Assembly: GCF_001447785.1 (NCBI RefSeq)
Contig: NW_015168777.1
Span: forward strand, 1 to 64,000
Length of the DNA: 64,000 nucleotides
Direction: 5' to 3'
Source of the DNA: Gekko japonicus
Lineage: Eukaryota
Positions 770 to 37,224 of this stretch are shown one piece after another. The translations under genes and the position numbers were made by a program. The notes below the pieces were generated by a model. The model worked only from the letters and a program-made list of their open reading frames with translations. It was not told the DNA's origin and searched no databases. Numbering within the stretch: position 1 is the stretch's first letter; each line of letters starts with the position of its first letter.

Positions 770-1523
770 TCAAAGTCAAATAACTTTTATTGGCATACAA
801 TATTAGAAGCAATTCCCAATATTAATACAATCCAATAGACATTATAAAATAGATAGTCATGGTAAACCATTCCAAGGATATATCAGGCCTATAACATAAC
901 TCAAGTTGTCACAAGATAGATTTGGCCATAAAAAAATGCCTGAGTCATAAAGTAAATTTGAATTCTAAACTTTAAAATTGAGTTTTTAAATTTAAAAATT
1001 AAGACTCATTAATGTGAGTCCGTTTTATAAAACCATGAAGAAACTTAGCGGTCAGTTCAATTATCTCCGGATCTTGTGAAGCAAGGAGATAATGTACCTT
1101 GATTCTATCCGGTTGGCCTGCTACCAACCTTAAGGGGGGATTCTATAAATTCCACTCGAATGTCATTTAACAATTTACAATTTAAGAGTACATGCTCAAC
1201 AGTTTCTATTTCTCTTCTATTACATCCACAAAACCTTTCTGAATGAGGGATTTTCTTATATCTCCCCCCAAGAATAGCAGAGGGGAGAACATTAAAACGA
1301 GCCAACAAATAAGTTCTACACATTTGCTCAAGTTAAGCTCCAAACAAATGGCAGCATAAGATACGCACGAAGGCAACCCCAGAATCTTCCGCAGGAATTT
1401 GGATTGAAGTTGTTCAACTGCTTTATTAAAAGCAGTAATCCATATAGGAATACCATATAGTAGCTTCACGCTAATTTGGTGTGCAAACACTTTTATAGCT
1501 GCTGGCACATACTGATTACCCTT
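770..1523 (-). mobile_element. 5'-truncated non-LTR retrotransposon 3' end (RTE-X-like; clade uncertain), degenerate
   Basis: Broken ORFs LLYGIPIW..EQLQSKFLRKILGLP and RFNVLPSAILGGRYKKIP..RFCGC..ETVEHVLLNC (LINE ORF2 C-terminal Cys/His region); AATAAA on the minus strand near 790. Confidence 0.8.
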
Positions 1524-1524
1524 T

Positions 1525-1757
1525 GGGTGCGTTCAGACGGGGTGTTTCAGCCGGCATAAACTGTACCAGTTGGAACCGGTGCAGTTTATGCCGGCTGAAA
1601 CACGATCACACTTACCTCCTGTCTGCGGATCCCATCGCTGTATGCCCGTTCACATGCAGCGGGCATTGGTTTTTTAAAAAAAACCTCAGTTTGCACATGC
1701 GCATAGGCAGCCATCCACAGAATGGTGAGCTTCACGCATGCGCAAAACACCCCGTCT
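1525..1757. mobile_element. Harbinger-like MITE with internal hairpin and truncated right TIR
   Basis: Starts GGGTGCGTTCAGAC (similar start at 53108); AGACGGGGTGTTT at 1535-1547 is inverted at 1745-1757; hairpin with perfect 22-bp arms at 1542-1603. Confidence 0.6.
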
Positions 1758-1771
1758 TACCTTTAAAGTTT

Positions 1772-1830
1772 AAAGGTAAAGGTTCCCTTGCTTGAAAGCC
1801 AGTCGAATCCAACTCTAGGGTTGCAGTGCT
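1772..1830 (-). mobile_element. Sauria SINE 3' tail fragment
   Basis: Near-identical to the 3' 60 nt of the full-length copy at 35863-36214, ending in the ACCTTT-repeat tail. Confidence 0.85.
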
Positions 1831-1837
1831 TGCCTGG

Positions 1838-2188
1838 ATGTCTACCCCGTCTATCCCGTTGATCAAGAGGACCCTATCTCCCACATGCAGGGTGCCGTCC
1901 CAATGTGCCGCACCCCCTTCTGCGATCTGCGAAATGAAAATCCTCGAGTCCACCGGCCCGTACGGCATGGAGCCCTTACCCCCCCGCAATGCTGAAACCG
2001 AGCCCCCGTTCATTTCACATCAGGCAAGCCGAGAGACGCTCCATGGGGGCCGCTCCTTCGGGCTGCCCTGGGAAGTGCAGGGCTCCCCCTCACCACTCCC
2101 GAGGGCTGTAGTCGTCTTCGGGCCACAGGGGAGTCACCGTGATGGCATTCTCGGGCTCCACCATTCGCTCCCGCAGCACCGTCATGCT
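1838..2188 (-). pseudogene. SCRIB: Processed fragment of Scribble (PDZ1-PDZ2 linker and most of PDZ2)
   Basis: Translates as SMTVLRERMVEPENAITVTPLWPEDDYSPREW*GGAL..CLM*NERGLGFSIAGG/KGSMPY..IFISQIAEGGAAHWDGTLHVGDRVLLINGID, matching recalled vertebrate SCRIB; two TGA stops at Arg positions and a +1 frameshift. Confidence 0.88.
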
Positions 2189-3349
2189 CCTGTCCCTTTT
2201 GTTTTTGACACTGCAACTCCCATCATCATTCTGAACTTTTGGGCCTATTTTCAAACGCATAGCTTTCTTTTTGGATGAATTATGCCTTCCATGGACAACT
2301 TTTGTTTCCACAGCAATTGAGGGAGTGGGGCGTTCCATTGATAATATGGGCAATGATGCTCATTTTGGGCATTACAACTCTCACCATCATTCTGTAGCTA
2401 GAGGCCAGTTTTGAGGTTCCAATTTTTGTGCCTACCAGTGTAAATCATGTTGAGAGTTTCTGGGAACTGTATGGGCTGGGATATTCCATTTCACTTCATG
2501 TTTGGCACTGCAACTCTCATGTTCACCCTGAAGCCAGTTGCCAGGAGACTCCTACATTTTCTGATGAGTTATGCATGTTGCAGATAGATGGATCCTTTTA
2601 TTGTTATAGACTAGGGGCTCTGTCCCTGCTTATTCCACTTGCCAACAATGAACCTCCTGTGCTCACCATATACAACAGTAGTTAGAATATTGAATGAGCA
2701 ATTTTGCCTTCTGCCAATAGTTTATTGCCTCCTGAAACAATACTAGAGGAAACATCTAAAGAGTGAGCATCCCTTTTTGAACACTGCAGCCAAAGTTAGA
2801 TGTGTGTGTGTGTGTGTGTCCCCAAAGGGGAAATTGTTCTCTTCTCTATTTTATAGTCACAACAACACTGTGAAGCAGGTCTGGATGAGAGGGTGTGACC
2901 AGGGGTGTGCCAAAGAATTACAGCAGAAAGGAAATTCCTTATTCTCCCTTACTTGTTCCTTTCTACAATTGGTGCTGCTTCTCTTTTTTTCTGATTACTG
3001 TTGTTGCCCCTTTCGTTAGTAGCCTTATCCACACCTGCCATTGCCCTTCCCACTCATCAATGCCACTACTGCATCCTCCTCCTTGTCATCCTGACACAAG
3101 ATGGGCATTCCACCATGCATTGTGGTGGCTATAAGAACACAAAATGATGACTGAAATCAGAATTGGTTTAATTTTTGTCATCCATACAGTTTCAAAATAA
3201 AATTTAGATTACTAATAAGACCCTTGGGGAAACCCCAGATTTTGAAGAATCCTCATAAATAGATATGCCTGGCCCTGGTGCATGGATCTACCTATCCACA
3301 CAGGGGAGCAACATATTAGAACAAGATACAGTGACACCAAAACATCACA

Positions 3350-4582: not shown

Positions 4583-5512
4583 TCATGGGTGAAGAATGAG
4601 AAAAACTTTACCAAGTGCCTCTTTCACCTCCTTGTTCCTTAGACTGTAAATAAGAGGATTTATAAATGGTGGCAGGACGGTATAGAAGAGTGATAGGAAT
4701 TTGTCCGTATCCAGAGAATGACTTGACTTTGGTTTCAGATACACTGTCATTCCAGAGCCATAGAAAACCACCACAACCATCAGATGTGAGGAGCATGTTG
4801 AAAAGGCCTTGCACCTCCCCTCTACAGATGGTATCTTCAGAATAGTGGAAGCAATGCATACATATGACATGAGGACCAAAGCAAAAGGGATTACTGCAAG
4901 TAATACAACCTCCACTCGGGCTACGAGCTCATTTATAGAGACGTCTCCACATATAAGGTTGACCACTGCAGGGATATCACAGAAAAAGTGGTTTATTTCA
5001 TTGGAGTCACAAAAATAAGAGGTGAAAACCAAGGAAGTCTGGGCAAGTTGCACTGGAACACCAGCCAACCAGGAGGCTGCAACCAGCTCATAGCATACTC
5101 TACTACTCATAATAAGAGTGTAATGCAAGGGTTGACAAATAGCCACATAGCGGTCATATGCCATGGCAGCCAAAATGTAACACTCAGCTGCCCCTATGAT
5201 GAGGAAGATGCTCATTTGAAAAGCACAGCCAAGGAATGAAATGGTTTTGTCCTCTGATAGGAGATTTCCAAGCATTTTGGGAACAGTAATTGAGGTGTAA
5301 CATATCTCCAGAAAGCTGAGATTCCTAAGAAAGAAATACATAGGATTGTGGAGTGTCTGATCGGTCAATGTGACAATGATTATTAGGCTGTTCCCAGTCA
5401 GAGTCAACAGATAGATGGTGAGGAATACAGTAAAGAACAAGCCTTCTAGGTCCAGCAGGTTAGAGAATCCCAACAACAGGAAGTTATTCACCATGCTCTG
5501 ATTTCTTCTCAT
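4583..5512 (-). CDS. Olfactory receptor, family 10 (OR10A/10AG-like), 309 aa, intact
   Basis: [58 protein letters not shown]-terminal NQS sequon; acceptor CTAACAG just upstream of the ATG. Confidence 0.95.
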   Translation of the reverse strand: MRRNQSMVNNFLLLGFSNLLDLEGLFFTVFLTIYLLTLTGNSLIIIVTLTDQTLHNPMYFFLRNLSFLEICYTSITVPKMLGNLLSEDKTISFLGCAFQMSIFLIIGAAECYILAAMAYDRYVAICQPLHYTLIMSSRVCYELVAASWLAGVPVQLAQTSLVFTSYFCDSNEINHFFCDIPAVVNLICGDVSINELVARVEVVLLAVIPFALVLMSYVCIASTILKIPSVEGRCKAFSTCSSHLMVVVVFYGSGMTVYLKPKSSHSLDTDKFLSLFYTVLPPFINPLIYSLRNKEVKEALGKVFLILHP

Positions 5513-33575: not shown

Positions 33576-35862
33576 GACAGATAGTTCTTAATGTTGTTGG
33601 AATTTCTTCATTTTTTGTTAAATTTACTCATTAAGGGTGTGCCTTTCAAGGGGAGGGATTGGCACCTGAAGAAAAAAATATGAGAAAACCCAGCCATTAT
33701 GGTGTTAAAAATGAAATATTTAATTATATAATTGATCACTCGTTGCCCTTTAATGGTAAACTGAAATCTACTGCCAGAAGTGAGCAGCCTCATCTTAATT
33801 AATGGTAGAACCAGCATGAACAATTCTAATATATATTATATATTATATTGTATCATACTTTTCAGCCAAAATTGTTTCCAAACTGATATATGCATTCTCG
33901 AGGTGAAAGTTGAAGCTTGCCTGACTGCCTCTAGCCATCCCTCTGATGGCAGTTGGAAGCCAGGCCTGGATCTGCCCCAGCCACATTTTGCAGTATTTAC
34001 CTCAAACTTATTTCCTCGCTACCCTTTAATTATTGTCATTGAACTGTATAGATATGAATCTGAGTTGAGCTGATTCCAGTCCAGTTCAAAGGTGAATTGA
34101 TTCATATGTGAGAAATGCTGACAGATATTATTGAGGAAAATAGGCAAATGAAAATAATCCAGATCAAGTTGAAATGTAACTTTTAAAATTGCATTTATAT
34201 TTTTTCAGCTATCAAGTCACATCAAATGTCTGTTTTTCAGTCACAGATTTCTCTCCTTTCTCATTTCCTCACATCATCATTGGAAGTATAGGAAAAGAAA
34301 AAAAACAACTTTAGAAAGCAAATTAAATACCGGAAACGTGTTGTTGGCTTCCTATTTCTTTCCCAGAGTCATTTCCTCTCCAGTTCAAGGATTCTAATGG
34401 GGCCTTAGCAGTTTGTGGGGAGAAAGACTGATCTCTGCCAACTTGTGGAAGAATCTGACATAATGAGGCATGGAAGTCACAGAGCAATTTAATAAATTTA
34501 ACAAATCACTTAATATATGAGGCTACACCTGACAACTAGTTCCAACTAATGTTGGCATTATGTGCTATGTAACATTGTAAAAGAACTATGAGGGGAGCAG
34601 GTGGAAGCATGGTTGACAATTCCATAGCACCTTTCCAGTTTTCCATGGGAGAACAACACATTTGAGAGGGGATGCCCTTTTGTTTGTTGTTTATTTATTC
34701 ATTTCTAGGATTCACACCCCACTTTTCTGTTCTAGTAAATGTCAAAGGCAACTAGCCTGACATGTCTTATTTCACACAGCAATGTGTTCCACTAACTCTT
34801 CATCAGAAGCAGTAAATGCTTATTTCTTTGACTTTTTTTTTTTTTACAGTGTCTAACATTGGGCTTTCACTGGAGTAACTCAGCATAAGACTGTGCAGCT
34901 TTTTGCCCAACCACCCACTGAATGAAAACACAACACCAATTATGGGTTAAACTGGGAACTATGTATAACAAGCTGATCTGCTGAACTAGTTGACTCTTTA
35001 AAGCACATGTTGTGATGGGCTTGCCAGGCAAGCCTCCTAACAGGGCAAAACCACCCCAGCTCAGAGCCAGTGCAGGACCATAGCCTGCATTGTGTGCACA
35101 GAGGAGATGGAGGGGCATAGTCCCCACCCTTGACTGCTTAGCCTTGAGGCTTGTCATATCCCCCCCAACTCCGAAGAGGCCCTTGCTGAGTTGCCCAGAC
35201 TGCATAGCCAATAGGGGACCCAGTTTGAGGACCCCCCATCACCGATATCTCAGGGAGCTTACCAATTTGAGCTCCCCTTAGCCTGTGCTTTTCCTGTCAA
35301 TCCAGTTAGGGCCTAACCAGATAAACCTGGCCCATCAGGACCATTCAAAGAAGGTTAGAAGACCCCCACCGGCCAATTTGAGTGAGGGCCCAAAGAATTC
35401 CTGCTCAGCCCCTTAACAGACAACCAGCTATATCCGGATGATCTCGAAAGAGGGAGGGAGGGAGGGAGGGTGGGGAGCTCGAGCTGAGCCAGAATGAGGG
35501 GAGGAGACAACTACAGCCCAGCCTAACCAGTGCACCTCCATCCCCTCGAAAGTATCCATGGAGCATTCCCCTATCAGCTAACACTCCCCCAGATGTTTTC
35601 TTCAGTGAGGGGGAGCATGCAAACACTAACTCCCATGCAGTTCAGCATGAACCGATCTTCTGCAGAAGTACTTCAGCAGAGTATACAAATCTAGAGACAC
35701 ATTTCCTTCCTTCATGGGTTGTGTTAGAATGGTTTTGTTGTTGTTTGTGTGTATGGTTAAATGCAAGCTAAATAAAAGGAAGAGCCAATTTATTATTATT
35801 CATTCGAGTCATTTATCCTTATATAAATGTTGCCTTTCTGCAAGATTGCTTTTGTGGCAGTA

Positions 35863-36214
35863 AGGTAAAGTTAAAGGTTCCCTTGCTCGAAAGCCAGTCG
35901 AGTCCGACTCTAGGGTTGTGGTGCTCATCTCCGTTTCCAAGCCGAAGAGCAAGCGCTGTCCGAAGTCATTTCCATGGTCATGTGGCCGGCATGACTAAAC
36001 ACCAAGGCGTACGGAACGCTGTTACCTTCCCACCAAAGTGGTACTTATTTATCTACTTGCAATTTCTTGCTTTCGAACTGCTAGGTTGGCAGGAGCTGGA
36101 ACTAGAGACGGGAGCTCACTCCATCATGTGGCAACTCGGGTCTCGAACTGCTGAACTACTGACCTTCCACATCCTGCAGTTCAGCATCTTAACCACTTGA
36201 GCCACCGCAGCTCC
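35863..36214 (-). mobile_element. Full-length Sauria SINE with 12-bp TSD
   Basis: tRNA-like head GGAGCTGCGGTGGCTCAAGTGGTTAAG, ACCTTT-type tail, TSD TTTGTGGCAGTA at 35851-35862 and 36215-36226. Confidence 0.92.
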
Positions 36215-37224
36215 TTTGTGGCAGTAGGGAGTAAATTAAAAACAAAAAACAACAATGTACAAAATAAAATAGTAAAACAGACCCACTTCTCAAAAGAAAA
36301 AATAATAATTTGAGATCCTTCTAAGATANNNNNNNNNNNNNNNNNNNNNNNNNNNNNNNNNNNNNNNNNNNNNNNNNNNNNNNNNNNNNNNNNNNNNNNN
36401 NNNNNNNNNNNNNNNNNNNNNNNNNNNNNNNNNNNNNNNNNNNNNNNNNNNNNNNNNNNNNAGTGTATATCTATCATGACNNNNNNNNNNGAGGGAGGGA
36501 GGGAGGGAGGGAGGAAGGAAGGAAGGAAGGAAGACCTTTAGGTCTTAAGTAGTGTTTATCAAACATGACTGGGATTATGACGAAGAAAGGAAGAATTCAG
36601 ACCAGAGAGGGTTAATACAAAACCAGCTGCTTTCTTGTAAATTGCCAGAATTCTCATGACTTGAACTAAAAACTTAGCTAAAATGATTAAATTTTCTATT
36701 TGTGAGTCTGCTAATAGTTTAGGAACTAGAATATCTACTGAAGACACTATCCACTGTAATGTCAAAGGTTTAATCCATTTCTGTTTCCCCTTGATATACT
36801 TTGTTGTTGTTCAATCGCACAGTTGGTAGGTTTAATGCTGTTGGTAGGTGTAATAAAATGGCAGTTACCTGTGTTTGTAAGATGGCTGCTGTCTGTGGTT
36901 GGTTGTTTAAAATGTTCCCCCATAAGGTTTAATTGAGCTGTCATTCCAGAGAGGGGCCTGCAGGGTTATCACTCACTGGGTTGAATGGGGTTTCCTCATC
37001 TGCTGGCCTACAGTTCCCAGCTGCCCCAAGGCCAAAAAGTGAGAAAAAAGAGGGACTATCCCAAGGGGCAGGGCAGCATCAATATAGATTCCAGCCCATC
37101 CAGCTGAGTTGTAAACTGGAGAGTTGAGACCGTTTCACCGTGGTAGGCAACCAAGCTTGGTTCAGACAAAGGAAGGAAACCCTTCACAGGCCTTTGTGAG
37201 GAACTTATTGTGGCCTGTCCTGAG

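Follow-up and report, generated by a model that had tools for sequence, protein, structure and literature searches.

A SCRIB coding fragment joined to a Sauria SINE tail in Gekko japonicus: a possible template-switch retrocopy

Introduction

The usual makers of gene retrocopies are held to be L1 enzymes, which read poly(A); LINEs that depend on a 3' tail of their own (BovB/RTE, CR1, L2) are, to our knowledge, credited with almost none. How, then, did a piece of coding sequence from SCRIB, a cell-polarity gene, come to lie directly on the tail of a Sauria SINE, a family partnered with such a LINE? The question is raised by a locus in a 64,000-nt stretch of Gekko japonicus DNA, the whole of which is here called the window. 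An earlier note on this stretch had read the locus as a chimeric retrocopy, formed when a reverse transcriptase of the BovB/RTE type began on SINE RNA and switched into SCRIB mRNA.

Results

Structure and identity of the chimera

All chimera coordinates refer to the minus strand. The chimera consists of about 360 nt of SCRIB coding sequence followed by a 59-nt Sauria SINE tail, without poly(A) (Table 1), and the head-to-tail fusion described in the earlier note is thereby confirmed, with the tail set at 59 nt. The SCRIB fragment has its 3' limit between 1831 and 1837 and its 5' limit between 2186 and ~2196; it comprises the end of PDZ2, the linker and the first half of PDZ3, and it stops mid-CDS, far from the SCRIB 3' end according to the PDB domain matches. 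Inspection of the sequence revealed no A-run between the SCRIB part and the SINE tail, and neither ORFs nor a GC scan disclosed a SCRIB-like or GC-rich remnant in the 1.7 kb downstream of the tail. What is present is what a template switch calls for: two RNA-derived parts on the same strand, the 3' part with the true 3' end of a retroelement. The SCRIB segment forms a 63% GC island in surroundings of 26-43% GC. Self-comparison of the window yielded no further copies of the chimera; only the SINE tail recurs.

Table 1. Coordinates of the chimera, its parts and its neighbours in the window (a dot marks a feature with no strand assigned).
Feature	Position	Strand	Evidence
Processed SCRIB cDNA fragment	1831-2196	-	PDB matches to PDZ2 and PDZ3, Pfam PDZ, GC island, RNA reads
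Last 59 nt of a Sauria SINE, without head or body	1772-1830	-	Match to full SINE, read boundaries
Inferred parent exon, 207 nt	1980-2186	-	Sole aligned part of a 718-nt organism B genomic contig
Inferred 36-nt exon, PDZ3 loop KGSMPYGPVDS-R	1944-1979	-	Depth gap in organism B, contig skip in organism A
Inferred parent exon, 80 nt	1864-1943	-	Sole aligned part of a 1,454-nt organism B genomic contig
In-frame TGA from CGA by CpG decay	2090-2092	-	Translation, reads, CpG context
In-frame TGA from CGA by CpG decay	2015-2017	-	Translation, reads, CpG context
Run of 7 G against 6 in mRNA, +1 frameshift	1979-1985	-	Frame change and reads
9-nt tandem duplication GGGATAGAC/GGGGTAGAC	1840-1857	-	TRF and reads
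Degenerate end of tail microsatellite AAACTTTAAAGGTA, or target DNA	1758-1771	-	Sequence; most SINE reads stop at 1771/1772
High-copy MITE at tail end, outside the chimera	1525-1757	.	Inverted ends, flank match, read depth
5'-truncated LINE 3' fragment (reverse-transcriptase C-terminus and 3' UTR)	790-1515	-	ORFs, weak zf-RVT, AATAAA
5' flank, core of older low-copy repeat	2198-2271	.	Read depth and organism B contigs

Compared one piece at a time, the translations bear out the assignment to SCRIB: that of 2093-2197 hits human SCRIB at the C-terminal end of PDZ2 (6esp_A, E 1.6e-4, MxVxRERMVEPENAxTxTPL), and that of 1837-2013 matches the single-domain SCRIB PDZ3 chains 7qrt_A, 6xa7_A and 1wha_A (E ~1e-15), with a Pfam PDZ match of 4.9e-9 to the same piece. 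DLG4 tops the PDB list for the PDZ3 piece only through the summing of several PDZ domains; the end of PDZ2, the linker and PDZ3 in one line are the SCRIB arrangement. The native domain order, the end of PDZ2 and then PDZ3, is kept on one strand. Read from 2196 to 1831, the fragment gives SCRIB-like protein in two frames: the first encodes DRSMTVLRERMVEPENAITVTPLWPEDDYSPREW up to a stop, then a linker of 24 residues up to another stop, then NERGLGFSIAGG, and the second, past the +1 shift in the seven-G run, encodes GGKGSMPYGPVDSRIFISQIAEGGAAHWDGTLHVGDRVLLINGIDGVDIQ. A word search for relatives of the 93-aa ORF, with a length window of 51-163 aa that leaves full-length SCRIB outside, returned none.

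The SINE tail

The window contains a full-length Sauria SINE, to whose tail (35866-35925) the letters 1771-1830 are 90% identical; the similarity ends at the junction. Alignment of the chimera to this full SINE halts 59 nt from the end, short of the Pol III head that marks a full member, and neither Rfam nor tRNA scans (ARAGORN) detected a SINE head beside the chimera. Both ends of the tail are reflected in raw DNA reads of the same species, of which ~39,000 from the SINE family part from the window right after 1830, into the SINE body, and ~27,000 terminate at 1771/1772. The tail is of the BovB type and ends ACCTTT ACCTTT; Sauria SINEs partner Bov-B LINEs, and their tails end in (ACCTTT)n (PMC13295347; PMC3747384, Table 1). 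No BovB copies were found within the window, and the retained 59-nt tail folds no better than its shuffles (z 0.39). The complete Sauria SINE that served as tail reference (35862-36215, minus strand) has a 12-nt direct repeat, TTTGTGGCAGTA, at both flanks. A self inverted match delimits a 23-nt palindrome at 1757-1779, TTACCTTTAAAG T TTAAAGGTAA, which is made up of the SINE tail end and the adjoining DNA.

Spliced origin of the SCRIB part

Genomic contigs of organism B, a related species, align to the SCRIB fragment in pieces: the 718-nt contig matches 1980-2186 without gaps and with 21 differences, and the 1,454-nt contig matches 1864-1943 with 4 differences, leaving 1,282 and 92 nt unaligned on its two sides. 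Between the two pieces, 1944-1979 has a depth of 0.5 in organism B, and one contig of organism A links 1943 to 1980, leaving out exactly 36 nt. RNA reads of organism A cover the whole fragment, and four of the six at 1979/1980 cross that point. The exon limits deduced from these data are accurate to ~2 nt; 1944/1943 falls between S-R and IF, and 1864/1863 between VLL and ING. Junctions had been predicted where GD. meets GIF and VLS meets ING, and these coincide with the limits of the organism B contig piece 1864-1943. Taken together, the organism B contig limits and the RNA reads indicate, indirectly, that the fragment crosses at least three exon junctions without intron DNA, and a fourth junction perhaps lies at 2187/2186.

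The 36 nt of 1944-1979, which encode the PDZ3 loop, may be a cassette exon, or the contig that skips them may stem from a second retrocopy of an isoform without them. We also considered a mini-intron here and rejected it: the segment begins with GT, yet it is SCRIB coding sequence and ends in GA in the skipped register.

Decay of the window copy

The SCRIB copy in the window is dead, with two TGA stops, a +1 frameshift and private CpG decay. At position 2092 the CGA letter is present in 11/11 DNA and 6/6 RNA reads, and at position 2017 in 8/8 DNA and 7/7 RNA reads. The TGG at 2093-2095, beside the TGA at 2090-2092, is derived from CGG; TGG is also found at 1900-1902, and all or nearly all other DNA and RNA reads have CGA or CGG at the decay sites. 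The proposal that Arg codons turned into stop and Trp codons through CpG decay once the copy had inserted is therefore upheld, and 9 of the 13 best-supported private differences are changes from CpG to TpG or CpA. RNA reads differ from the SCRIB part of the window by at least 3-7 letters per 100.

Within the G-run at 1979-1985, one G is missing in four of six RNA reads and in none of the 8-9 raw DNA reads, and the 7-G run appears to be common to other genomic copies. It is also kept in the remaining two of six RNA reads; one or more retrocopies may be transcribed, or these reads may be DNA carry-over.

A 9-nt stutter had been noted near the junction. The repeat itself is real (a TRF call at 1840-1859, period 9), but it does not belong to the junction event, as the extra 9 nt are absent in 10/12 DNA reads, in 2/2 RNA reads and in one contig. 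Being private to the window copy, the duplication is ruled out as a scar of a template jump and is attributed to later slippage.

Copy number of the SCRIB part

The genomic run that was read amounts to ~1.9 Gb, or ~0.8x on an assumed genome near 2.5 Gb. Raw DNA depth over 1840-2180 is flat at 8-11, where <1x is expected, and falls to 0-0.3 in the unique right flank (2282-2349 and 2418-2500). The contig run agrees: the exact-match contigs have a word depth of 34-53 against a summed 540-2,490 over the SCRIB fragment, and up to 14 distinct contigs occur at one of its sites. DNA reads over the SCRIB part are free of the private changes of the window. The simplest reading of the read depth suggests ~10 genomic copies, all derived from a single founder in which the +1 frameshift was already present. 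The earlier note had raised the number of copies of the chimera; the depth of ~10x is what speaks for several copies, and it speaks for the SCRIB part. A faint hint that sister copies may have the same SINE tail comes from the reads with the 9-nt gap, which must reach the tail or cross the junction at 1864. Organism B shows exon-limited SCRIB pieces only, and the family of copies may therefore be lineage-specific.

Flanking elements and searches for a target-site duplication

The MITE next to the tail is ~233 nt long, with terminal inverted AGACGGGGTGTTT, and is flanked by TTACCCTTT and TTACCTTT. Its raw DNA depth of ~900-1,900 corresponds to ~1,000-2,000 copies, and the contigs of the family begin at 1525. 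It has an internal 62-nt palindrome (1542-1603), is represented in RNA reads too, and in organism B is all but missing its middle part. When the MITE is taken out, the end of the SINE tail lies within 10-15 nt of the truncated 5' end of a LINE fragment on the same strand. This fragment has ORFs at 1206-1508 and 1105-1323 and an AATAAA near 790; its zf-RVT match is weak (E 0.016, below cut-off), and an Atlas search with the LINE ORF gave no informative match on the clade. The LINE fragment is either a neighbour of the chimera or its third template.

On the other side, the repeat that forms the 5' flank is present in a few dozen copies in both species (raw DNA depth 25-36), and organism B contigs align to it from 2195-2203 to 2271. 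It opens a loose tandem repeat (2198-2560) with a 32-nt core at 2202-2233, 2363-2394 and 2501-2532 (81% identity), and elsewhere units of this repeat stand head to tail, 87-150 nt apart.

Under three models (the chimera alone, the MITE removed, and the chimera plus the LINE), no target-site duplication above chance was recovered. Only AAAGGG is shared between the two flanks, in which matches of 6-8 nt are at chance level and which are AT-rich and disturbed by the MITE and the LINE. A Tn-TA signature (TTT ~10 nt upstream of TA at the repeat start) has been published for Bov-B and Sauria insertions; here it is not visible, the 5' flank (2197-2240, minus strand) being A-rich without TTT, and the repeat is undefined. 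An exact 10-mer, CTTTAAACTT, is found at 1766-1775, in the end of the SINE tail, and at 567-576, ~1.2 kb downstream; exact 9-mers arise in 18/200 shuffles, and the pair is possibly the duplication of a later LINE insertion. At 4583-5512 (minus strand) an intact 309-aa ORF is olfactory-receptor-like, with NPLIYSLRNK among its motifs, which places the chimera in an olfactory-receptor region.

Discussion

The best reading of the locus, to which we give about an even chance, is a dead chimeric retrocopy that arose by priming on Sauria SINE RNA and a subsequent switch to SCRIB mRNA. A reverse transcriptase recognising the BovB-type tail would have started target-primed reverse transcription on the SINE RNA and copied its last 59 nt, and would then have moved, by a template switch, to a spliced SCRIB mRNA, entering it mid-length, within the PDZ3 coding region, possibly at a short AGCAC that we guess to be common to both templates. 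Some 360 nt of SCRIB mRNA would have been copied over at least three exon junctions before synthesis stopped ~0-10 nt into the next upstream exon, giving a product in which the SINE tail replaces poly(A). The window copy afterwards gained the 9-nt duplication, the two CpG-decay stops and the MITE at its tail. The anatomy in two parts, the spliced origin and the decay are established by the data; which template came first and which enzyme acted are what we infer.

A complete SINE 3' end, a clean same-strand junction, a piece from the interior of an mRNA and the lack of poly(A) all speak for a template switch, as does the boundary of the SINE-family reads, which lies exactly at 1830. On the other side, a same-strand LINE fragment that touches the SINE tail fits a chimera primed on that LINE, the window has no BovB copy, the retained tail folds no better than random, and if the window copy is secondary, the locus is uninformative on the original event. 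The family suggested by the read depth, with its common frameshift, means that the original jump may have occurred at another locus and that the window copy may be one of ~10. Of the mechanism put forward in the earlier note, the template switch stands as the best reading; the BovB/RTE enzyme was proposed for a locus at which we found neither a target-site duplication nor Tn-TA, and the LINE fragment offers an alternative primer template.

That alternative would be a three-template chimera made by another LINE without any BovB enzyme, in which synthesis started on the LINE RNA (~790-1515), jumped to the 3' end of the SINE RNA and then to SCRIB mRNA. The geometry suits it, since the LINE fragment lies on the same strand with its truncated 5' end within ~10-15 nt of the SINE 3' terminus once the MITE and the flank repeat are removed; the classic L1 chimera involves a jump to the 3' end of a small RNA (PMC4494074), and tripartite chimeras are documented (PMC2104539). 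Yet the 5' flank (2187-2240) and the DNA past the LINE 3' end are linked by no duplication, the clade of the LINE is indicated by nothing beyond the weak zf-RVT match and the uninformative Atlas search, and the tail, AT-rich and of the TTTAAA type, is a place where a LINE is likely to have inserted later and independently, at which the CTTTAAACTT 10-mer hints; we consider a three-template origin quite unlikely. A history of two events, in which a 5'-truncated Sauria SINE inserted at a later time into an ordinary processed pseudogene of SCRIB and a deletion or rearrangement removed the SCRIB sequence downstream, is less favoured because it needs more coincidences, and we regard it as very improbable. 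Truncated SINE and LINE copies are common (PMC13295347), and the locus did take further insertions (the MITE and the LINE fragment), but the extra deletion would have to end exactly at the SINE 3' end and to leave no SCRIB-like or GC-rich trace in the 1.7 kb downstream; moreover, the 59-nt piece is without a flanking duplication, and the shared orientation and clean junction are what a template switch predicts.

A further idea, in our view distinctly doubtful, is that the chimera founded a small lineage-specific mobile family, the 59-nt BovB-type tail alone having repeatedly mobilised an mRNA body without a Pol III head. If true, we would be seeing the birth of a new non-autonomous retroposon, and the ability of a stringent LINE to spread coding fragments would be directly demonstrated. 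The multi-copy signal might instead reflect duplication of a small block at the DNA level, or several independent SCRIB retrocopies, with no tail-driven spread, which we judge somewhat unlikely. The depth over 1840-2180 is flat, with no gradient of 5' truncation, at other loci the adjoining 2198-2271 repeat has a tandem-like arrangement, and one 6-G contig that crosses two junctions represents at least one copy of another lineage, all of which agree with such a history. A large duplication is, however, contradicted by the right flank, which is single-copy past ~2280 (X1 depth 44), and independent retrocopies would not have the 7-G frameshift in common (none of the 8-9 DNA reads is without a G).

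LINE enzymes are well established as makers of template-switch chimeras (PMC4494074, PMC2104539), and chimeric L1 retrocopies of the U6-L1, U6-Alu and mRNA-L1 type (Buzdin 2002; Garcia-Perez 2007) are cited in PMC4494074. The SCRIB chimera resembles these L1 products in that two unrelated RNAs are joined head to tail in one insertion, the 3' part being a retroelement 3' end and the 5' part a cellular RNA. It differs from them in its 3' part, the tail of a BovB-partner SINE (the stringent type) without poly(A), in its 5' part, an internal piece of a coding mRNA in place of a small RNA or a 3'-anchored mRNA, and in that a target-site duplication was not recovered around it. With a Sauria SINE it shares the last 59 nt and their ACCTTT repeats, whereas the tRNA-related head, the SINE body and Tn-TA are missing and foreign sequence rides on the tail. 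Like an ordinary processed pseudogene, the SCRIB copy is spliced, has no promoter and carries disabling stops and a frameshift; unlike one, it is without the gene 3' end and poly(A), comprising ~360 nt from the middle of an mRNA of roughly 5 kb. Should the LINE fragment stem from that one event as well, SCRIB, SINE tail and LINE 3' end would in this order form a double jump resembling the tripartite chimeric pseudogenes of the Magnaporthe MGL LINE (PMC2104539), although host and LINE are others and the third part here may be a mere neighbour. In the literature searched we found no description of a BovB-type SINE tail that carries a piece of coding mRNA.

The SCRIB chimera, taken as one dead fragment, is without a likely function. 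A piece of spliced mRNA on a SINE tail nevertheless represents one way round the own-tail rule, namely to prime on the SINE and jump to the mRNA, and the same template-switch step is the standard proposed model for the birth of SINEs. If the ~10 sister copies prove to be dispersed insertions with the same junction, they would form a new family that rides on a tail and has a protein-coding body, of which natural examples are rare.
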